From the NCBI GenBank assembly GCA_964019335.1, contig OZ025709.1:442389-506388 (forward strand): a stretch of 64,000 nucleotides of DNA, written 5' to 3'. The translations under genes were made by a program, and so were the position numbers. Positions within the stretch are counted from its first letter, which is position 1, and every line of letters starts with the position of its first letter. A model generated the notes under the pieces. It did not search any database, was not told the origin of the DNA, and worked only from the letters and a program-made list of their open reading frames with translations. Source of the DNA: Diplonema japonicum (lineage: Eukaryota; Protista; Euglenozoa: Diplonemea). Shown one piece after another: positions 52,087-64,000 of this stretch.

Positions 52087-52240
52087 TCTCAAAGCTGTTT
52101 GATGTTTGATGTCGGTGACGAGGTCAGTCAACGCATTAGCTAGAGGCACGGCCCCTAGGGAGGTGGCTCCGCTGGCGGGGAACCTGGTTGCCCTCAGGAA
52201 GAACGACAGGGACGTGTGGCCCATAGCAGTCGAGGATGTG
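52087..52240 (+). mobile_element. Short diverged fragment of the CRE-type RT
   Basis: Matches 54524-54676 (SVTR.VNALARGTAPREVAPL..NLVAL.KNDRDV.PI). Confidence 0.85.
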
Positions 52241-52327
52241 AGTGGGCTTTGCCTTCCTCTGGTGTGTTTCTTTTGGAAAAAAAAAAAAAGAAAAAACATT
52301 CTCAAGTCCCCCTTTTGATTCTTTTTT

Positions 52328-52364
52328 CCAACGATTCTAAAGCTACAGTTTCTGTACTTTATTG
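52328..52364 (+). other. Spliced-leader exon copy (37 of 39 nt)
   Basis: CCAACGATTCTAAAGCTACAGTTTCTGTACTTTATTG. The 3' half matches the conserved euglenozoan SL (CAGTTTCTGTACT.TATTG) and the 5' half resembles the diplonemid SL as I recall it. Confidence 0.85.
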
Positions 52365-52535
52365 GTCGTTCGTGTTCTGCTGGTGCCTGCCGCCTCTGCC
52401 TGGGTTTGCCGCTGCGTCCGTCGTCCGTCGTCGCCGTCGTCCGGGGGGGTTGTTTTGCCCGTCGGCCTGCCCGCCGCTTACCGAAAGGATCCCCTCCCCC
52501 AACACACTTTAAAAAAAAAATAAAAAAAATAAAAA

Positions 52536-53221
52536 ATGGATCCAAGACGGAACGCAAGAGGAGGTGACCACACAAACCGCAGGGAGAAGGAACCCCGACA
52601 GGCCGCCAGGCTGCACACGACGCCAGGGCCGACCCAACCAGACTATCTGGTTGGGCAGTATGAATCCCCACCCCCACCCCCTAGATCCCCCCACCCCCCT
52701 TTAGAAAAAAAAAATAAAATAAAAAATCACTAGTAGAGACCGCGGTTTTGACCGCCGCTGCTACAGCCACGGCCGCCCCAGCCGCCCTGAACGCCGCAGC
52801 CGACCCTGCCGCCCTGATCACCGCAACTGAGACCGCCGCAGCCGCCCCTGCCGCAGCCACGACCGCCGCGACCACGACCCCTGCAGCCGACCCTGCTATT
52901 GTTGAAGAGGGAAGAAAAGAGGGAGAAAAAAAGGGGTGGGTACTGGTGTATGGTGAACACCCTCCCGGGTTGAGGACGGGCCCGGCTCCTGCCTTCCCGA
53001 AAGCCCTGCTTTCAGGAAAGTGGGAGGCCCTGTCTGGGAACTCAGGGAGGGAGACCCTCCAATACGGGTACCGGTGGGAGGGGATGAACGCCAAGGTGCG
53101 CCCCACCACGGGGATCCCAGGGGGGGCGGAGGGGTGGGTAGGTGGCCGCCGCCGCAGGGCTCAAGGTGGTCCCCAACCAGGTACTTGTCAACAAGTACAA
53201 GTCTGGTTGTGGGATTGCCGC
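52536..53221 (+). pseudogene. Truncated AlkB-domain ORF (copy 1)
   Basis: Homologous to 61848-62603. Frameshifts in the A-run (~52720) and at ~53140, and it breaks off at GCGIA just before the HxD motif. Confidence 0.85.
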
Positions 53222-53683
53222 CTAGGTTTATCGTGCCTTGTGTGTCTTATGGAAAAAAAAAAAAAAAAAAACATTCTCAAGGCCCCTTTTTTTATTCTCA
53301 AAAAAAAAAAAAAAAAAAAAAAAAGCCCACAAGGACGATGCCTTTCCCCCTCCTAAATTTTACCCCCTGCTCCACTCATTCCTCCCTAGTATGTTTTTGA
53401 ATTTGCCTCTTCTTCTTTTAAGCCTTTTTTGAGATTTTTATTTTTGAATTTTTATCATTTGGAGTTGCTTCTTCTTCTTCCCCTCTCCCTCCCATAAAGA
53501 AAAAGAGAAACCCATGCCTTCCTCCCAGGTTGGAACTTGATTGTCTGTTTTGGAATATTTTTATTTTCTCTTAAGGTTTATCGTGCCTTGTGTGTCTTTT
53601 GAAGAAAAAAAAAAACATTCTCAAGTCCCCCTTTTTATTTATTTTCTCAAGTCCCCCTTTTTAAAAAAAAAAAAAACCCGCAA

Positions 53684-56600
53684 AGCACGACCCCGTTCAA
53701 CTCGACAAGGGTATGGAAGTGTCACCTGGATGCGCACCTGGAGAGTGATGAGATCCCGGAGAGCGTTCTGAGGAGACTGGACCTCGAGAGGTGCCTGGTG
53801 TGCAGGGGCTGTGTGTGGAAGGGTCAGGGGTGCCACGACGAGTGCAAAAAGGCGGTGCGAAGGGAAGGGGAATACACGACCCCCCCGCCGGCCCCGACGA
53901 GGACCGAGTTACCCAGCCTGGAAGCCATAGCCGCCATGAACGTCACGACCATGGGGTCGATCCCGACGAGCCTTCAAAGACTGTGGGGGCTTACCCTTAA
54001 GCACACTCTGGGCCGGGCGGTGAAGGACAACACAGAGGAGGCTTGGCTGCTGGTGGCGATGCTCCCCAAAGCCTGCCTGTGGAAGAAGAGGGGAGGGAAG
54101 AAGCGGGACAAGGAGACGGAGCTGAGTGTCCAGGCCAGATTGGAGGAGTGGGAGAAGGGAAATTACATGGCCCTCTGGAATAAGCTGGAATCAGGTGAGA
54201 AGGGGGAACCTAAGAACGACGAGGTCTCTAAGGTCGCCAAGGCCACGGAACTGTGCAGCAAAGGGAGGTTCTCGGCAGGAAACGCGGCGCTTGTAGCCCA
54301 GGGGCTGGCGGAAGACAATGAGGATTGCTGGAGAGCGCTGCAGAGCAAACATCCAGAGCCACTACACCCCCAATGGGACAACCCGGCGAAGACGAAGGAA
54401 GCGGTAGAAGTCTTGCCGGAAGAAGTGCTGGACGCAATCAGGGACTTCCCGAGGGGGACTGCTGCGGGACCGACTGGGCTGAGAGCCCAGCACATCAAGG
54501 ACGCGGTGGACGGAGCTTTTGAGTCTCAAGGCTGTTTGATGTCGGTGACGAGGGCAGTCAACGCATTAGCTAGAGGCACGGCCCCTAGGGAGGTGGCTCC
54601 GCTGATGGCAGGGGCGAACCTTGTGGCCCTCAAGAAGAACGACAGGGACGTGCGGCCCATAGTCGTTGGGGATGTGCTGCGTCGGCTGGTGGGGAAATCC
54701 CTTGTGAAGAAGATCGCTCCGGAAGTGGCCTCTTCGTACCTGAAGAAAGGCGGCCAGGTGGGGGTATCGGTCCCTGCTGGAATGGAGGCGGCTATACACA
54801 CCATCAGGCAGTATGTGGACAGGGAACGGGGCAACAAGCAGGAAAACAAGGTGATCCTCAAGATCGACTATGCCAACGCCTTCAACAGTGTTTGTCGGAG
54901 ACAGCTGTGCTCACAGGCCTATGAGCAAGCGTCGGGGCTGTATGCGTGGGCCGATTGGTGCTACAGGGTGCCCTCCCAATTATACTACAACGGAAAGGTG
55001 ATTAAGTCCCAGGAAGGGGTGCAACAGGGGGACCCGATGGGACCACTGCTGTTCTCTCTGGCCATCCAACCCCTGGTGAACAAGATAAGTGAAGACTGCA
55101 ACCTGGACATCCTCCAGTTCTACCTGGACGATGGCGTCCTTGTGGGGAATGTGGATGAAGTGAGAAAGGCGTACAACATCTTGTGTGAGCTGAGCGGAAT
55201 GATAGGGCTGAAAGTGAAACCCCAGAAGTGCGAGCTCATATGGGTTAGTGGCGACCTCCCCCAGACAGTGGAGGACACAGGCTTCGATGGCCGGTCTCCA
55301 CGGCTAACCCGGTCGCAGACACGGCCCCTGCCACAGATCCAGTCCCCGCAACCAGCCCAGTCGCTGACCCGGTCCCCGTCACAGACCCGGTCCCCGCAGC
55401 TAACCCGGTCCCTGTCACGGACCCGGCCCCCACAACCAACCCGGTTGGAGACACGGCCCCCATCACAGACCCGGTCCCCGCAGCCAGCCCAGTCGCTGAC
55501 CCGGTCCCCGTCACGGATCCGGTCCCCGCATCTGGCCCGGTCTCGATAGTCCCTGACGACCCAGTGCCCACAACTGGCCCAGTCTACGCCACGGACCTAG
55601 TCAGTTCGCCTGGCCCGATCTCTGTCACGGACGCAGTCCCCACCACAGGCCCGGTCCACGCTTCTAGTCTGATCCCCTCCGCAGACCCGGTTCCAACACC
55701 AGGCGCAGCCTCCACCAGAGACCCGGTCCCCGCGTCTGACCCGGTCCTCGCCTCGAACCCGTTACCCGAAGTTGATGCCCTCCCCGTTACAGACCCAGTC
55801 CCCGTGCAGATGGACCTGTCTGAACCTCTGGGGCAGCATGGATCGACGACATGGGTGCAACCCGAGCCCTCAACGAAGGCGGTCGCCCCACCACCCCTCT
55901 TGACGACAGCGGAGCCCTGGGTGCCGTTAGCTCTGACGACGATGTCGCAACGACAGATGCAAAGCAGTAGCAGGACTGCGTTAGGACGGGGCACTTCTAC
56001 TTCTCCTCCTTCTTTTTCTGCTTCTTCTTCTTTTACGCGAACAACGACGACTGTCCATCAGAGTCTGCTGTGGTCCGATGTCCCGGGGCACCAACGAGGT
56101 CGTGGGGGCATCACGAGAGGTCGCACGTCAAGCCCCGGATCACAACCGAGACGCGCACACAGCGCAACGACCGCGTGTTTCCCTCGCACCCCAGAACGAT
56201 TCTCACCCCTGGCCGGTCTGTCGGCTACAGACGACCTGTACATGCCGGAGCTGACACAGCACAGCAGAGACATGTACATGCTGGAGCCACCCGCGGATTT
56301 GACTGCTGCGACGGAACCTCCTCCTCCCCCACAGGGGGACATGTACATGCTGGAGTCACCACCCACGGAGTCGACGCAAACAGACGACGACCCCCATCCT
56401 CAGTCAGCGAGACCTGCCCCACGGGGGACCGATGAGGCACAGAGAAATCTGAAGGTGGTCATAGACCTGACTGGCGACGACGACGACAAAGTCTCTGCCC
56501 CGACCTCGACCCCGCCATCGGAAACGGCGGAACCTGCGCCACGGACGGAGGAGCTGGAACTGGCATGCCTCACTACCCACGACGGCGACGAAGCCCTGGC

Positions 56601-59600
56601 CCCACACTCAGCCCCAGCCCCGGCCCCGCCCCTCGCAAGCCACCACAAGAAGAAGCGAAAGGGAGGCGCATGCCCGGACGTGTACCTTGGCCACGACACC
56701 AAGCTGGTAAGGACCAGCACAGATCGTGCACCAGAGCCACCTCTGCTCGTCAAATGGCGGTCCAAGAGCGCGAAGCGCGGGCAGTTGTGCGACGGACAAG
56801 CGGAGCCCGCAAAGAAGAAAGACCGCTTGGACCTCCTCAGGGCGAACCGACGGTCGGGCAAGGCCGCCGTTCACGCCCTGGCTGAAGAACATCGAGCGGG
56901 TCTGGAAGATAAGCTCTCCCACACGAAACTGGCGACGGCCGGGATCGTCGAAGCGGAAGGGGAGTGGACGCCAGAAGCCATGATACGGGTCTGCAAACAC
57001 GTGCTCGGCGAAGAGCCTAAAACCGCGAAGGAACTCGGGATTCACATGAAGTTTGTCCGGTTCGCCCTCATCCTGGACTTTGACAAGACGTGGATCATGG
57101 CCAGGTATGACTCGGAAGGCTGGAAGGCGAAGGGGGACGTCGAGAGACGGCAGCAGTTCACGCGGCACGGAGATATGAGAGCCTTGAAGGATCACTACTT
57201 CGTGGCCACTGACTGGCTGTTCTTCACCACGCTGCAGTGGCATAATGTGGGACAGCGCCACCCCCCAAGAACCACGAAGACCTTACGCAAGTAAGAGTGC
57301 TGGCCCGGCGAGCTACGAGGGCAAAAAACCTCTTTTCTCCTTGGAGATGAGAACATATATTATAGTGCGACATGATCAGACTGGAACGGCCGCCCCGGGG
57401 CATCCTCTGCTCAACCCGGCGGACGTGGGAGGCCCTTCTTCGGAAGGTGCCAGTCGCTTGATCAGTGTCGTCGAATGCGCGCTATATTTTACATTTTATA
57501 AGTACATATAACAATCGATTGAAAGAAGAAGAACGTTTACCAAAGGCTTCGATGGCCTGACAGAAGAGAATTTCCACAAAGAGAGGAACTTCATGCTCCT
57601 GGGGGCGCCGATAGGATCGCCAGAGTACACGCAAGCCTTTCTGAACAAACGCTTGGACGCGCTGGAAGAGAACTTCGACATGCTGACCAAGGTGGGGAGG
57701 CAGGGTACACACTTCTCCGGAAGGTGGGGAGACAGGGTACACACTTCTCCGGTATTGCAGCTCATACAGCAAACTGGTGTTTTACATGAGAGTGGTCCCA
57801 GACTCGCATGTGGGAGGGGTCATGCACAGGTTCGACGAGATGGTGCGGAAGACGATGTCGAAGGTGTGCGGCATGCAGTTCGAGAGCGGGTCGAAAGAAT
57901 GGCAGCAGGCGAAACTGTCCGTAAAAGTCGGTGGGCTTGGGATGAGGAGCTGCCAGGAGCACCTGCGCGCGGCCAACATGGCTTCGAGGGCGTCGACGAT
58001 GAAGCTGTGCAAGGAGCTGGATCCCAAATACGAACATGGGCTGGAAGGGGGTGTATGGGGGAGCTGGCTCGAGTGGTTCAACAGGACGAAAGGCGGCATG
58101 CAGATTACACCCGACATGGTGGCCAAGGCCCCCCACATCTGCAGCCAGAGGTGGCTCTCTAGGGTGCTTGATGAGAAGGCGCTGGAGGACCTCTTGGCGA
58201 AAGCAGATGCACGCTCGAGAGCGAGGTTGATGTCGGAGTCAATGCACTATGCGGGGGCGTGGTTGACGGCGACGCCTGACTTCTACAACCAGCTGTCGGA
58301 CAACGAGTTTGGGGCTCTGATCAAGTGGTGGTTGGGGGCTCCGGTCTACAAGCAGGGTGAGAGCTGCCACGACCCGAGGTGCAAGACTGAGGGGATGGAC
58401 GTATGGGGTGACCATGCCCAGGGATGCGGCAACGCCAGGATTGCGAGGCACGACCGGGTGAAGGAGACCATCCACAGACACTGTCAGTGGGCCGGGGTGA
58501 GCGCAACGATGGAGAAGACGGGGCTGATCCCGGGGTCGTCCCAGCGCCCGGCGGACGTGTTCTTCCCAGGTGGGGGGGTTCCCGCCCAATGGCTATGGAC
58601 GTGGTCATCGTGCACCCGAGGAACGAGTCTTGTGTCAACCAGGCGGCGAAGACTGCGGGGTATGCAGCGGCGAAGGCGGAACACTACAAGCGCCAGAAGT
58701 ATGAGGCGGAGCTCGCCAAGACACGCGTGGCCTTTGTACCTTTCGCGATGGAGACCTTCGGGGGGTTCGGGGAGGCAGCGGTCTACCTCACGAAGAAACT
58801 GTCCAGGAGCATAGCTGCGCGGGCCCACGGGGACAGAGTCTCGATACACAGGCGTGTGGTCCAAGAGGTGTCAACGGCCATGATGAGATCGATAGCAGGG
58901 GCGCTGTTAGTCAAAGGGCCTGTACAGTTGGATCCCGGGCCCCCGGTACCGGACGGCGAAGAGGAAAAAAAGGACAACGAGGAAGCGAACAACGAACCCA
59001 ACACTGAATCCAACACTGACCTCACAGAGGACTCCTTCGGCAATGAAAAAACCACCGAAGCTGAGGAGTCGTCCGAGAGGGAAGTGAAGGGACAGGGAGG
59101 CGGACCCCCAATCACGGTGGCCCACCAGCTGGATGCCCTTCTGGAGCAGACGAAGAAGGACCTGGACGCCCGAATGCAGCAGCAGCGAAAGGCGGAACCG
59201 GTGGAGGGTGGAACACAAGGGAAAGCGGGAGCAGGACTCGAAGCAGCCTCGCCGGGAGGAGAAGACACGGAGATGGCCGGAACAGGATCCAGCGAGAGGG
59301 CTGGGCAGGGAGGGGAGCTTGACCCGAAGGCCCAGGAAGATGGGAAGAGACAAGGGGCGACTGACGCTGCGGTGAACCGGACCTTGGACCAGTGTCCTAA
59401 GGGGGATACGGAGGCCCAGAGGGACTCGAACAAGGGGGTCTGCGGAAGATGGGTGTTGAAGAGGTCGACCTGCAGTCAGCGGTGGTGACGGTCCCGGGGT
59501 TGTTCGAGGACGTCTCCTTTGAGAGGTACCTTGGGCTGTTGGCCCGGAAGAAGGAGGAAGACAGGGAGAGGCGGCCTGAGGTGGTTGCCACGGACCTCCC

Positions 59601-59909
59601 CACCCTGGAAGAGCTGAAGTGGAGCAAGAAGGACAAGAAGCGGGCCCGGGCCCGATCGGCCAGTACTGACTCGGATTGTGTGGAGGGTGGCTACATCTAT
59701 CTGAAGGGTACGGGGGCGGATGGCACCGTGGTCGAAGCCAACATATGCAGGGGTGAGCTCAAGGGGATGACCAGGCCCCAGTTCAAGTTCTTGGCGGAGC
59801 ACAGGTTGATGGAGGAGCTGGGGAGCGACGACCTGGTGCGGGACACGGTCAAGGTGCGCAACACGTCCCCCTTTTTATTTTTATTCACAAGTCCCCCTTT
59901 TTAAAAAAA

Positions 59910-59940
<31 letters not shown>
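53684..59940 (+). mobile_element. CRE/SLACS-clade non-LTR retrotransposon (Zn finger-RT-CCHC-RLE), 5'-truncated and disrupted
   Basis: Half C2H2 finger (F..RVWKCHLDAH), AAGPTGLRAQH, VRPIVVGDVLRRL, KIDYANAFNS, GVQQGDPMGP, FYLDDG, LLGAPIG, QAKL..GGLG, CHDPRC..HAQGC, RHD, RPAD, MDV, K.QKY, PFAMETFGG. Lesions: 2.25-kb insertion, 32-bp duplication near 57690-57752, frameshift at G-run ~58575. A-run at 59903-59940. Confidence 0.92.
55293..57543 (+). mobile_element. 2.25-kb insertion in the RT, flanked by a 14-bp TSD and carrying a 5'-truncated ORF
   Basis: AGGCTTCGATGGCC at 55279-55292 and 57544-57557. Removing the insert and one repeat restores DTGFDGLTEENFHKERNFMLLGAPIGS. The insert frame is open from its left edge to 57294 with 18-bp xTDPVP repeats. 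Confidence 0.9.
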
Positions 59941-59941
<1 letters not shown>

Positions 59942-60518
59942 AAGGAGAACTGGGCCCCGTTGAACAGTTTTCTTTTTTCTTGTGTGGTGATGTGTTTTTC
60001 CTGTTTTTGATTTTCTTCTTCCCCCGCTCTATGCTTTTTCGCATGGACATTGGTCACTCTGCCCCTTTCCCCTTTTTTGATTCTCCCTCTTTCCCCCTCC
60101 TAAATTTTACCCCCTGCCCCACTCATTCCTCCCTAGTATGTTTTTGAATTTGCCTCTTCTTCTTTTAAGCCTTTTTTGGGATTTTTATTTTTGAATTTTT
60201 ATCATTATTTTCTCAAGTCCCCCTTTTTAAAAAAACCCCTCAATGTCCACCTTTCCAGGGTGGTCGATCCACCCCCCTGGGCTCGCAAGGGCCCAGGGCT
60301 TGAGCAGCCTACATTAAGGGTTCCTGAGGGAAGCCCACTTTAGAATTCCCCCTTTTTTTTTTTTTTTTTTTTTTTTTTTCCATTACAACAAATCGACAAT
60401 GGGGGAAAAAAAAAAAAAAGAAAGATAGCAAAAGAAAAAAAAAGGGGTCCGGGAGTTTTCCCCCTGAAGTTCCTTTGTTAAAACATGTTTGCTGTTGGGT
60501 TTCCGTTTCTTTTCTTTT

Positions 60519-60790
60519 TGGTTTAACTAGGAGTTTTCCTTCTACAGCTTGTTTGCTGATGGTTTTGGGTGATTCTTTTTTATTTTTTATCTTATGGTTT
60601 AACTAGAAGTTTTCCTTCTACAGCTTGCTTGCTGATGGTTTTAAGTAGATTCTCTTTTATTTTTATTTTTATCTTTGGTTTAACTACAAGTTTTCCTACA
60701 GCTTGTTTGCTGATGGCTTTAAGTTGACTCTTTTTTATTTTTATTTTTGGTTTAACTAGAAGTTTTCCTTCTACAGCTTGTTCGCTGACG
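60519..60790. repeat. Four tandem ~65-75-bp units GGTTTAACTAGAAGTTTTCCTTCTACAGCTTG.TTGCTGATGG
   Basis: Directly visible. Confidence 0.85.
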
Positions 60791-60850
60791 GGTGGGTTTA
60801 TCGGGCGGGCTTCCATAGCTGGTGATCTATGGAAGCCTTCCCAGATTTTT

Positions 60851-60887
<37 letters not shown>

Positions 60888-61643
60888 CAGGCCGGGCTGG
60901 GGAAGGACGACAAGACCACCAACGGAGGAGAAACCGCTGCAGAAAGGGGAAAGGTGCAGGAAGACGAAGAGGACGAGAGGGCGTCTCACAAAGACTCCCT
61001 TTAATTCATATATCTTTTATTTTCCTTTTTATTTTTCTTTTCTTTATTTTCTTTCTCCCAACCCAACCCCCCCCGAAAAAAAAGAAAAGAAAAGAAAAGA
61101 TTCATTCCTCCCTAGTTTATTATATTTTGCATCAGGTTCGCCGAGAAAATAAAAGGAAAAACAAAGAAAGAGAACGGCAACCAAATTTTAAATTTTTATT
61201 TTATCATCAAAGGAGGTTTGAAAAAGAGAAAAATTAAAGAGAAGAAAGAGACCTTTTTCTCCTCTATCGATAAGTGATTCACGAACTCGAATCTTTATCA
61301 CCACTTTTTTGTGCATGCCAGATTTTTTTTTTTCTCCCGCCTTGTTAAAGAAGTTTTAATTTACTAATAAAAAAAAAAAGTGAAAAGAGGAGTAGAAGAC
61401 GATCCGGTGGGGGGCATGGGAACCATAAACCGTGTCTTCCATCGCGATCGGCAAGGCGGGGGCTTTTCCGTCCCATGGGTGAAAAGAGGCGGATAAAACC
61501 ACTATTCCGGACCCCCCCCAACACTGAGCATGCACTTTTTCCCCCATACATACCTCTCTTGTTTATCAAAATATCACCACTTTTACGGCGGACGCCAAGA
61601 AAAAAAAAAGCCAAGGAGAAGGAGTTTAGGGAAATAACAAAAG

Positions 61644-61681
61644 ACCAACGATTCTAAAGCTACAGTTTCTGTACTTTATTG
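61644..61681 (+). other. Spliced-leader exon copy (38 of 39 nt)
   Basis: ACCAACGATTCTAAAGCTACAGTTTCTGTACTTTATTG. Homology with the 52328 unit begins exactly here and upstream flanks differ. Confidence 0.87.
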
Positions 61682-61847
61682 GTCGTTCGTGTTCTGCTGG
61701 TGCCTGCCGCCTCTGCCTGGGTTTGCCGCTGCGTCCGTCGTCCGTCGTCGCCGTCGTCTGGGGGGGTTGTTTTGCCCGTCGGCCTGCCCGCCGCTCAACG
61801 AAAGGATCCCCCCCCCCCCATCACACACTATAAAACAAAAAAAAAAA

Positions 61848-63139
61848 ATGGATCCAAGACGACTCGCAGGAGGAGGTGACCGCAGCCGCAGCCCGCAGGA
61901 GCAAGCCCGCAGCCCGCAGTGCACGGCACCAAGACCCACCCAACCAGGCAATCTGGTTGGGCAGTATGAATCCCCACCCCCTAGATCCCCCCACCCCCCT
62001 TTAGAAAAAAAAAATAATAAAAAAAGAAAATCACAAGTAGAGACCGCGGTTTTGACCGCCACAACCAAGGGAGCAGCAGCCCCTGCTACAGCCACGGCCG
62101 CCCCGGGTCTGCCGCCCCAAACGCCGCAGCCGCCCCTGCCGCAGCCACGACCGACACAACCACGATCGCCGCAGCCGCCCCTGCCGCCTTGAACGCTGCA
62201 GCCGCCCCTGCCGCAACTGAGACAGCCGCAGCCGCCCCTGCCGCAAGCCCGACCTCCGCAGCCGACCCTGCCATAGTTGAAGAGGAAAAAAAAAAGAAGA
62301 AAAAGGGGGAAGGGTGGATACTGAAAGATGGTGAGCACCCCCCCGGGTTGAAGACAGGTGCTGCCCCCGCCTTCCCAGAAGCTCTGCTGTCCGGGAAGTG
62401 GGAGGCCCTGTCAGGGAACACGGGGAGGGAGACGCTCCAGCATGGGCACCGGTGGGAGGGGACGGACGCCGAGGTGCGCCCCACCACCGGCATCCCAGGG
62501 GAGGCAAAGGGGTGGGTGAGGGAGGTGGCCGCCGCCGCAGGGCTCAAGGTGGTCCCCAACCAGGTACTTGTGAATAAGTACAGACCTGGTTGTGGGATTG
62601 CCGCCCACAAGGACGACGCAAGACTGGGACCGGTCGTCCTAGTCTTGTCGTACGGGGCTGAGACCACAATGGTCATGAGGAAGGGGGGCAGGGTAGCGAG
62701 GTACCTGGTGCCCCCCTTCTCATGGGCACTGTTGGAAGGCGAAGCGAGACACCAGTGGACACACCACATCCCGTCAGGGGTGTCCACTGGTGTCAGGGTG
62801 TCGATCACCCTGCGTGCGGTTGGCCCCGAGCTCACCCACATACCCCCCCAGGAAGACCCACCCCCTGGGCTAGCAAACGAACCCCCCCCTTTTTTTTTAG
62901 AACCCTCCACGGAGGTAAAAAACAGACCCTCTTCGAAGGAAAATGGAGAGAGAGGGGAAGAGGCAGCGCTCCCAAAAGAGGGTAGTGTTCCTCCCCCCCA
63001 TTTGTCCCCCCCTTTTTCATTTTTAGAGCCCTCTTTGGAGGAACCCTCCACGGAAAACAGACCCTCTTCGGAGGAAAATAGAGAGAGAGGGGAAGAGGTG
63101 GCACCCCCGAGAGAGGGTAGTGTTCCTCCCCCCCTTTGA
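61848..63139 (+). CDS. AlkB-family Fe(II)/2-oxoglutarate dioxygenase with Ala/Pro/Thr-rich N-terminus (one frameshift near 62100)
   Basis: NQVLVNKY (NxY), GIAAHKD (HxD), ARHQWTH (distal His), RVSITLR (RxSxTxR). The ATG 61848 frame joins the 62189 frame via a 1-nt shift near a C-run. Copy 1 is in frame at that point. Confidence 0.88.
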
Positions 63140-63494
63140 TTTTCTTCTTCCCCCGCTCTATGCTTTTTCGCATGGACATTGGTCACTCTGCCCCTTTCCC
63201 CTTTTTTGATTCTCCCTCTTTCCCCCTCCTAAATTTTACCCCCTGCCCCACTCATTCCTCCCTAGTATGTTTTTGAATTTGCCTCTTCTTCTTTTAAGCC
63301 TTTTTTGAGATTTTTATTTTTGAATTTTTATCATTTGGAGTTGCTTCTTCTTCTTCCCCTCTCCCTCCCATAAAGAAAAAGAGAAACCCATGCCTTCCTC
63401 CCAGGTTGGAACTTGATTGTCTGTTTTGGAATATTTTTATTTTCTCTTAAGATTTATCGTGCCTTGTGTGTCTTTTGAAGAAAAAAAAAAAAAA
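63135..63494 (+). repeat. Shared AT-rich 3' module ending in an A-run
   Basis: Near-identical to 53343-53615 and 60007-60207. Its TTCTCAAGTCCCCCTTTTT extension appears at ~52299, 53618, 53644, 59885 and 60210. Confidence 0.85.
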
Positions 63495-64000
63495 CCCGCA
63501 AACCCGCAAACCCGCAAACCCGCAAACCCGCAAACCCGCAAACCCGCAAACCCGCAAACCCGCAAACCCGCAAACCCGCAAACCCGCAAACCCGCAAACC
63601 CGCAAACCCGCAAACCCGCAAACCCGCAAACCCGCAAACCCGCAAACCCGCAAACCCGCAAACCCGCAAACCCGCAAACCCGCAAACCCGCAAACCCGCA
63701 AACCCGCAAACCCGCAAACCCGCAAACCCGCAAACCCGCAAACCCGCAAACCCGCAAACCCGCAAACCCGCAAACCCGCAAACCCGCAAACCCGCAAACC
63801 CGCAAACCCGCAAACCCGCAAACCCGCAAACCCGCAAACCCGCAAACCCGCAAACCCGCAAACCCGCAAACCCGCAAACCCGCAAACCCGCAAACCCGCA
63901 AACCCGCAAACCCGCAAACCGCAAACCCGCAAACCCGCAAACCCGCAAACCCGCAAACCCGCAAACCCGCAAACCCGCAAACCCGCAAACCCGCAAACCC
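63492..64000 (+). repeat. (AAACCCGC)n tandem array, >=63 units, runs off the right edge
   Basis: Perfect 8-mer apart from one 7-bp unit near 63915. Confidence 0.98.

Follow-up and report, generated by a model that had tools for sequence, protein, structure and literature searches.

AlkB, OTU protease and reverse transcriptase domains in a putative chromosome-end retrotransposon of Diplonema japonicum

Related elements and their likeness to the diplonemid one

The trypanosomatid retrotransposons CRE1/CRE2, SLACS and CZAR, non-LTR elements (lacking long terminal repeats) of the restriction-like endonuclease (RLE) type, insert within the spliced leader (SL) exon of SL RNA genes. A 64,000-nucleotide stretch of the Diplonema japonicum genome (the window; C62:442389-506388) was analyzed here. 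It forms the right end of a contig 506 kb long, in an assembly of 132 contigs that totals 62.5 Mb. An array of copies of one site-specific non-LTR retrotransposon family very probably occupies the chromosome end here, with its distal part in the region from 52.1 to 64.0 kb of the window; the intact ~9.3-kb form of the element encodes an AlkB dioxygenase domain, an OTU protease domain and a reverse transcriptase (RT). Two AlkB-bearing stretches of the window are referred to as unit 1 (52328-53683) and unit 2 (61644-63494); an RT-RLE copy lies between them. The element resembles CRE1/CRE2, SLACS and CZAR in its euglenozoan host, in the zinc fingers that precede the RT, in the CCHC motif and putative restriction-like endonuclease that follow it, and in its strict site specificity. 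It differs from them in that the whole SL is found only as a 5' RNA-derived tag, the target is a terminal 8-mer repeat and the protein is ~2.5 times longer; the trypanosomatid elements are not known to carry AlkB or OTU. An earlier note on this DNA had cited the insertion of CRE, SLACS and CZAR into SL RNA genes. The present element does not lie in such genes: a complete SL is found at the 5' end only, the 3' flanks are 8-mers and the 5' flanks are 41 different sequences. The one lead to the CRE clade is the automatic GenBank name "SLACS 132 kDa protein" of D. papillatum homologues, and word-indexed protein searches for CRE-clade references returned no trypanosomatid CRE, SLACS or CZAR sequences.

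Head-to-tail arrays of a single orientation at chromosome ends are shared with SART1/TRAS1 of Bombyx and HeT-A/TART/TAHRE of Drosophila; like SART/TRAS, the diplonemid element inserts into the telomeric repeat in one fixed register and is joined to it through poly(A). SART and TRAS use an APE-type endonuclease, and the Drosophila telomeric elements direct their poly(A) toward the centromere and occur with no telomerase repeat, whereas the diplonemid element has a putative restriction-like endonuclease and a poly(A) facing the terminus, in a genome with a candidate TERT.

In "Flexiviridae 2" replicases, an AlkB domain with OTU after it is the standard arrangement (PMC544882). The likeness to the replicases of carla-, fovea-, tricho- and vitiviruses is one of domain layout; theirs contain an RNA-dependent RNA polymerase and belong to plant hosts, whereas the diplonemid protein contains an RT and has ~800 residues between AlkB and OTU. 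Phalaenopsis Ty3/Gypsy LTR elements carry an AlkB (m6A demethylase) open reading frame (ORF), the demethylase activity of which was shown in vitro (PMC9289625). That AlkB is a separate, extra ORF near plant ALKBH9/10 in an LTR element, in contrast to the in-frame N-terminal AlkB of the present non-LTR element, whose AlkB is closest in fold to ALKBH6 and ALKBH8. SL-tagged retrogenes of dinoflagellates have DNA-encoded, relict and tandem SLs at the 5' ends of the retro-copies (PMC5585692, PMC12014239); those are host genes copied in trans, whereas here the SL tags the retrotransposon's own copies in a euglenozoan host. A literature search for AlkB with non-LTR retrotransposons found nothing, the AlkB-OTU-RT combination was not found described for such elements, and the orchid Ty3/Gypsy AlkB is the only published precedent found. 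The accessory enzymes of elements related to long interspersed nuclear elements are few, namely endonucleases, RNase H, esterase and, rarely, proteases.

Architecture of the intact element

The intact element begins with a 38-nt SL and a ~165-nt leader, continues with a single ORF of ~2850-3000 amino acids, and ends with a ~0.4-kb pyrimidine-rich 3' untranslated region (UTR), poly(A) and sometimes 26-nt tail repeats. The encoded protein comprises, in order, an Ala/Thr/Pro-rich region, AlkB, acidic repeats, a basic region, C2H2 fingers, the OTU protease, a C2H2 finger, RT, the CCHC motif with the putative restriction-like endonuclease, and a long C-terminal tail. Elsewhere in the genome, same-strand matches to AlkB, OTU (PF02338) and RT report an identical open frame, 2826-3005 amino acids overall, in at least three element families:

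Window's own family, RT 98-99% identical to the window copies: C9 (2884 aa), C16 (2967 aa), C31 (2826 aa)
Second family, AlkB 52-53% and RT 49% identical to the window copies: C24, two copies (3005 aa), and C33 (2889 aa)
Third family, AlkB 48% and RT 47% identical to the window copies: C18 (1951 aa)

These shared frames support the order SL-AlkB-zinc finger-RT-RLE that the earlier note had proposed for the intact element; the OTU domain is additional and had been missed. In a locus of the third family (L062), the C-terminus of AlkB, the basic region, C2H2, OTU (GDGNC...H), C2H2 and the N-terminus of RT lie in one 1086-aa stop-free stretch. The OTU profile scores 53.2 bits in the window's element family and 61 bits in L062, in frame between AlkB and RT; the copies in the window are devoid of OTU.

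AlkB and RT are separated by 3228-3379 nt at at least 20 places. More than 100 AlkB matches were found in the genome, almost all within ~10-40 kb of contig ends, on the minus strand at low coordinates and on the plus strand at high coordinates. The copies run head-to-tail, with the poly(A) end facing the terminus. AlkB is thus neither the single-copy host gene nor the domain unlinked to RT that the earlier note had considered as grounds for abandoning its proposal. It had also considered that the shared 3' module might be an independent short interspersed element. The 341-nt module of unit 2 recurs with 99-100% identity at 40 genomic places, among them C9:697-1037, C31:621-961 and C16:776777-777117, where it lies immediately 3' of the full-length frames. 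This position identifies the module as the element's own 3' UTR and sets the length of the element at ~9.3 kb.

A protein of D. papillatum, KAJ9442719.1 (2635 aa), contains AlkB, OTU, RVT_1 and an endonuclease region, and has the same layout as the D. japonicum element. Sister gene models of D. papillatum are named "SLACS 132 kDa protein" or "tRNA (carboxymethyluridine(34)-5-O)-methyltransferase". Two with the latter name, P0010 (KAJ9439924.1, in which the AlkB domain alone was seen) and P0015 (KAJ9446222.1), appear to be AlkB or AlkB-OTU pieces of the retrotransposon family. Membership in this family explains the methyltransferase and SLACS labels on the GenBank models. The publication on the D. 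papillatum genome counts "a dozen AlkB-type genes" separately from "SLACS reverse transcriptases" (PMC10161547); part of that dozen may be transposon-borne.

Both AlkB and RT were assigned to the window in the earlier note, and profile searches agree: ORF 62189-63139 of unit 2 matches 2OG-FeII_Oxy_2 (PF13532) with 53.2 bits (cut-off 31.2) and ORF 53798-55549 matches RVT_1 (E 9.4e-17). In an alignment of the AlkB domain with 44 library homologues, H104, D106, H156 and R167 are invariant and R173 nearly so; the HxD...H iron triad and the RxxxxxR motif that binds 2-oxoglutarate (2OG) are present. The AlphaFold model has a predicted local distance difference test (pLDDT) score of 92.2. Its best fold matches in the PDB are ALKBH6, ALKBH8 and ALKBH2 (E 1e-11 to 1e-10, TM ~0.7), followed by NMAD-1, Ofd2, ALKBH5, E. 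coli AlkB and ALKBH3, and a PDB sequence search with the domain yielded ALKBH8 (E 1e-8). The library-wide search found no AlkB relative above 42% identity, and the nearest are ~180-aa stand-alone proteins and D. papillatum element fragments. The comparison of copies called for in the earlier note was made over the 165-codon AlkB core. The ratio of nonsynonymous to synonymous substitution (dN/dS) is 0.13-0.23 at dS 0.34-1.0 between element subfamilies, which points to purifying selection between them, and 0.3-0.7 among near-identical copies, as expected of dead copies.

Spliced leader, target repeat and copies in the window

The SL 19-mer CAGTTTCTGTACTTTATTG occurs in the window at 52346 and 61663 only, both on the plus strand, with 0 occurrences expected by chance. 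Across the loci examined and the window, the SL precedes the leader in 32 of 32 distinct leader contexts. Units begin at SL nucleotide 1 (+/- 3 nt) after 41 distinct upstream contexts, among them 8-mers, poly(A), eroded bodies of the element and unique DNA. In some copies the SL is joined to GATCC immediately after AAAG in the leader, an alternative junction, and one copy reads SL + TTTCTGTACTTTATTG, a relict after ACAG that represents re-splicing at the SL's own ACAG. Tandem SLs are present in two copies, and the first 13-23 nt of the SL are repeated in three. The exact SL starts, the varied upstream flanks and the relict and tandem SLs identify the SL as an RNA-derived tag rather than a flank left by insertion into an SL gene. 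The reiterated, tandem and relict SLs point to end-stuttering by the RT and to renewed trans-splicing of SLs encoded in the DNA.

Such 5' ends are seen at L003:1450-1520, L008 (minus strand), L013:1450-1520, L011:1466-1540, L019 and L002:1500-1560. Among all the variant SL junctions, an AG acceptor fits just two, SL|GATCC (after AAAG) and the relict that follows ACAG; the others look like microhomology deletions. Contigs from sequencing runs (four of the 19 listed runs aligned, library type unknown) bear out the SL boundary, a unit start at 61644 and the sequence usually found ahead of 63135; they link 8-mer repeats back to 61644, and many unrelated sequences continue after 61681-61683. The element leader was also considered as the intron of the SL RNA and rejected, as abundant contigs continue SL+GT with ACCCAATCTG... 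and not with the leader. The commonest continuation after SL+GT in the run contigs X1 and X7, at 61683, is ACCCAATCTGATCCATGATC..., which is unlike the element leader and probably represents the true SL RNA gene's intron. At L059:289-390 a complete SL is joined to unrelated GTAGAGCGGTTTGAAAAG..., which is the retro-copy of a different mRNA or else a member of a further SL-headed element family.

Genome-wide, contigs start with (GGGTTTGC)n and end with (AAACCCGC)n. A 32-mer of the 8-mer repeat occurs 5492 times, and every listed place is a contig end in the same polarity; the canonical telomere repeat, sought as TTAGGGx3 across the genome, is absent. The element poly(A) always enters CCCGC-AAACCCGC, giving a junction of the form An-CCCGC-AAACCCGC. 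Many 3'-eroded elements are capped straight by 8-mers, with 9-mer variants beside the junction (L007, L008, L011, L013, L014, L020, L023, L029 and L046 were examined with the window), which looks like de novo repeat addition. A candidate RNA-binding domain (RBD) of TERT is located at C41:533974. The C-rich strand AAACCCGC reads 5' to 3' toward the terminus, the reverse of the usual G-rich polarity. A literature search found no mention of the 8-mer terminal repeat, and the repeat and polarity of diplonemid chromosome ends appear to be undescribed.

The features of the window, all on the plus strand, are as follows.

52103-52240, +: orphan RT-body fragment, 3'-truncated, 88% identical to 54533-54676, running into 3'-tip pieces
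52241-52327, +: 3'-tip pieces, A-run 52277-52289 and tail motif CATTCTCAAGTCCCCC (read directly)
52328-52364, +: SL DNA copy without its first A, 5' end of the unit 1 fragment
52365-53222, +: leader, Ala/Thr/Pro-rich N-terminus and N-terminal ~60% of AlkB (subfamily B), 78% identical to unit 2 at 61645-62605
53224-53676, +: four short pieces of the 3' end stacked one after another, with an A-run closing each (a 3' tip of 45 nt, pieces of 63 nt and 274 nt, the latter from the 3' UTR, and a tail piece of 55 nt)
53677-53684, +: lone terminal-repeat unit CCCGCAAA between two insertions (read directly)
53685-60235, +: 5'-truncated RT-RLE copy of the same element (RVT_1 ~54632-55240, FYLDDG 55118-55135, 3' UTR from 59941, A7 60229-60235)
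55293-57542, +: unrelated 2.25-kb insertion that splits the RT between YLDD and LGAPIG, with a 14-bp flanking duplication AGGCTTCGATGGCC
58365-58711, +: putative restriction-like endonuclease, motifs read by eye (CCHC 58365-58427, RHD 58443-60, RPAD 58545-65, AMDVVIV 58592-618, KxxKY 58688-711)
61644-61681, +: full 38-nt SL, the exact 5' end of unit 2 (sequence read and run contigs)
61682-61847, +: 5' leader with the alternative AG|GATCC junction
61848-62192, +: native start of the polyprotein ORF (MDPRR...), reaching a stop
62297-62837, +: AlkB dioxygenase domain (Pfam, invariant columns and model)
62606-62614, 62762 and 62795-62815, +: AlkB iron- and 2OG-binding residues of unit 2, H104-x-D106, H156 and R167/R173, respectively
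62838-63137, +: Pro/Ser/Glu-rich repeats (PSSEENRE...), ending at the internal-deletion junction ~63135-63137
63138-63480, +: the element's 3' UTR module, recurring at 40 places with 99-100% identity
63481-63491, +: poly(A) tail, fused with the AAA of the first repeat
63492-64000, +: terminal (AAACCCGC)n array, x64, the insertion target, where contig C62 terminates

The two units had been described in the earlier note as having the same order of SL, leader, AlkB and shared 3' module. Unit 2 stands, as do the SL copies, the A-runs, the 3' module and the 8-mer array, whereas its unit 1 (52328-53683) resolves into an SL-to-AlkB piece at 52328-53222 and the four stacked 3'-end pieces. Unit 2 corresponds to the first 1494 nt of a copy of the type seen at C39, joined to the last 360 nt; it is 95% identical to that copy including gaps, and 98% in the AlkB protein. 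Compared with the C39 copy it has lost 52 nt of the Ala-rich repeat, which puts its ATG ORF out of frame with AlkB and brings it to a stop. No second genomic place spans the internal junction, and in run contigs 63135 is usually preceded by ...GTGGTGATGTGTTTTTCCTGTT, an upstream part of the full-length 3' UTR. The AlkB of unit 1 ends at ...GCGIAA, just before the HxD iron site, and thus has none of the iron/2OG residues; ORF 52748-53356 gave no match in a Pfam search. The A-runs that close the four pieces are at 53253-71, 53300-24, 53605-15 and 53663-76, the 3' UTR module copy among them (53342-53615) is 99% identical, and the tail motif CATTCTCAAGTCCCCC recurs at 53622, 59862 and 60196. An RT fragment running into pieces of the 3' module had been noticed near 52087 and is the one listed at 52103-52240. 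Judged from the reading frames, no piece in the window would be able to make AlkB from its own ATG, and all of them appear to be dead.

The RT-RLE copy begins inside a C2H2 finger right after the CCCGCAAA remnant and retains just ...KCHLDAH, as the earlier note had seen; copies of the third family have CPVYGC...HLNDH at this position. The stretch 53684-55292 is 99-100% identical to more than 25 other copies. In other RT copies query position 1609 is joined directly to 3858, that is, without the 2.25-kb insertion, and in the window LGAPIG follows at 57596. The copy is frameshifted between RPAD and DVV of the endonuclease. By eye, C-x4-C-x11-H-x3-C, RHD, RPAD, DVV and KxxKY are kept in D. papillatum, and the region 58365-58711 is homologous to residues 1790-2051 of D. 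papillatum P0153 (E 7e-43). An RT domain of the non-LTR type, a poly(A) 3' end, frequent 5' truncation and a fixed target site are the non-LTR characteristics observed. An Rfam scan of 50-64 kb yielded sub-threshold chance matches and no ribozyme or SL RNA family.

Proposed mechanism and alternative explanations

According to the mechanism proposed for the element, its RNA would be trans-spliced and polyadenylated like a host mRNA before being copied. The endonuclease would nick the G-rich strand after GCGGGTTT, and the TTT-3'OH of the nick would prime on the poly(A) tail for target-primed reverse transcription. The cDNA would extend to the capped SL end, at times stuttering there, and the 5' join would often remove upstream repeats together with the 3' part of the preceding copy. 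Unit 2 and the first unit 1 piece would arise when the RT, at the start of the 3' UTR, jumps to a position that lies 0.9-1.5 kb from the 5' end, and the remaining pieces of the window would be ordinary 5' truncations. By analogy with the flexivirus replicases and the orchid Gypsy AlkB, the AlkB domain might oxidatively strip methyl groups (m1A/m3C or m6A) off the element RNA. This might keep translation and reverse transcription unblocked, or spare the RNA from being marked for decay, and OTU might remove ubiquitin-like marks or cleave the polyprotein. An in-frame AlkB, maintained by purifying selection in several families and in two genera, suggests that methylation of RNA or DNA does hinder retrotransposition in these abundant marine protists. 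With its parallel in plant RNA viruses and an orchid LTR element, the AlkB domain is a compact candidate enzyme that bears on the repeated recruitment of demethylases by mobile genetic elements against epitranscriptomic control. The element also marks diplonemid chromosome ends.

Several points weigh against a site-specific, AlkB-OTU-encoding chromosome-end retrotransposon. The continuity of the single frame is based on identical open-frame lengths and partial loci, and homopolymer errors of the long-read assembly could create or mask some frameshifts. Run contigs of unknown library type cannot show transcription or strand, and the proposed mechanism gives no account of how an SL-headed DNA copy would be transcribed again with a single SL. 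The closest solved relatives of the AlkB domain, ALKBH6 and ALKBH8, are not classical m1A/m3C repair enzymes, and the function of AlkB here is predicted. Finally, the upstream 8-mer tracts are mostly just 0-4 repeats long, which end-healing or target deletion fits better than random insertion within a 500-bp array. Preferential addition at critically short or eroded ends would account for such short tracts at most copies. It forms part of a broader and rather doubtful proposal, in which diplonemid ends may be jointly built and repaired by a repeat with a C-rich 3' strand, (AAACCCGC)n, and by the SL-capped AlkB-OTU retrotransposon, with copies preferentially added to short or eroded ends. AlkB would then be an epitranscriptomic counter-defence that removes host methyl marks from the RNA of the element, and the AlkB-OTU module would be shared or convergent with that of plant flexiviruses.

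The arrangement in the window could have arisen mainly by duplication, gene conversion and break repair between chromosome ends rather than by recent retrotransposition, the elements being fossils homogenized by recombination. Identities of 99-100% in 40 copies of the 3' UTR and 98-100% in the RT would be expected of such homogenization, three tandem copies are spaced at 6021 bp at C99, and eroded elements healed by 8-mers attest to unstable ends. Nonetheless, poly(A), exact SL starts, 5' truncations, varied 5' flanks and SL stutters and relicts are marks of RNA-mediated insertion, and a fossil origin agrees poorly with the purifying selection indicated for AlkB between subfamilies and with several uninterrupted frames of ~2900 amino acids. 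This explanation is considered unlikely.

Short SL-AlkB-3' UTR units are present at several chromosome ends, in the window, at C24 (2.7 kb, with a 709-aa open frame) and at C108, and they possess the 5' and 3' ends that the RT would need. They could form a self-standing, non-autonomous partner family of the HeT-A kind, encoding AlkB only and copied in trans by the RT of the long element, and the earlier note had offered a non-autonomous AlkB unit as one of its two readings. However, each junction examined is different, which argues against a partner family. The C24 and C108 units are 99.9% identical over 2.2 kb and yet their 3' UTRs are joined from points 85 nt apart; the window unit, joined from body nucleotide 1494 and with no second copy, represents a third point. 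Moreover, neither window copy is translatable from the native ATG, and cases in which OTU and RT follow AlkB at the fixed spacing are at least as frequent. The 3' breakpoints are concentrated in the U-rich stretch with which the 3' UTR begins. The short units were also considered as spliced forms and rejected, as their junctions are without GT..AG. By their sequences they look like defective internal-deletion products of recurrent RT template jumping, and a propagating non-autonomous lineage is very unlikely.

That the AlkB units are processed pseudogenes of a host AlkB mRNA, picked up by chance by the telomeric retrotransposon machinery, is scarcely credible: a retro-copied host mRNA would have a 5' SL and a 3' poly(A), and the genome has at least eight interior AlkB-type genes, but several families and D. 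papillatum have the same AlkB in one frame with OTU and RT, the 3' end of the units is the element's own UTR, the interior genes score 63-129 bits on the Pfam AlkB profile compared with ~56 for the window's element family, and a near-identical interior copy is not among the protein matches.

Some further observations concern the neighboring sequences. The 2.25-kb insertion in the RT copy recurs alone and near-identical at the interior loci C51, C30, C52, C85 and C93. This unclassified mobile element contains a 48-nt tandem repeat on its 5' side and an ORF of 576 aa, for which a Pfam search gave no match. The interval 60240-61643, which separates unit 2 from the RT copy, contains T-runs at 60353-60379 and 60846-60887 that may be poly(A) tails of retroposons on the minus strand, and, at 60510-60788, 3.7 copies of a 76-bp tandem repeat. 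In L017 the stretch ~61482-61505 adjoins 8-mer repeats, and it may be the end of a different telomere-associated element. The 26-nt tail repeat ATTTATTTTCTCAAGTCCCCCTTTTT occurs in 1 to ~10 tandem copies (L023:288-425, window 53622-53662 and 60196-60228, and C99). In the copies read (L023 and window 53622-53662) it sits between the element poly(A) and the 8-mers, and it may derive from slippage at the start of reverse transcription. At C99:343379-361762, three to four tandem OTU-RT parts recur with a 6021-bp period, together with arrays of the 26-nt tail repeat, which looks like amplification by unequal exchange rather than insertion.

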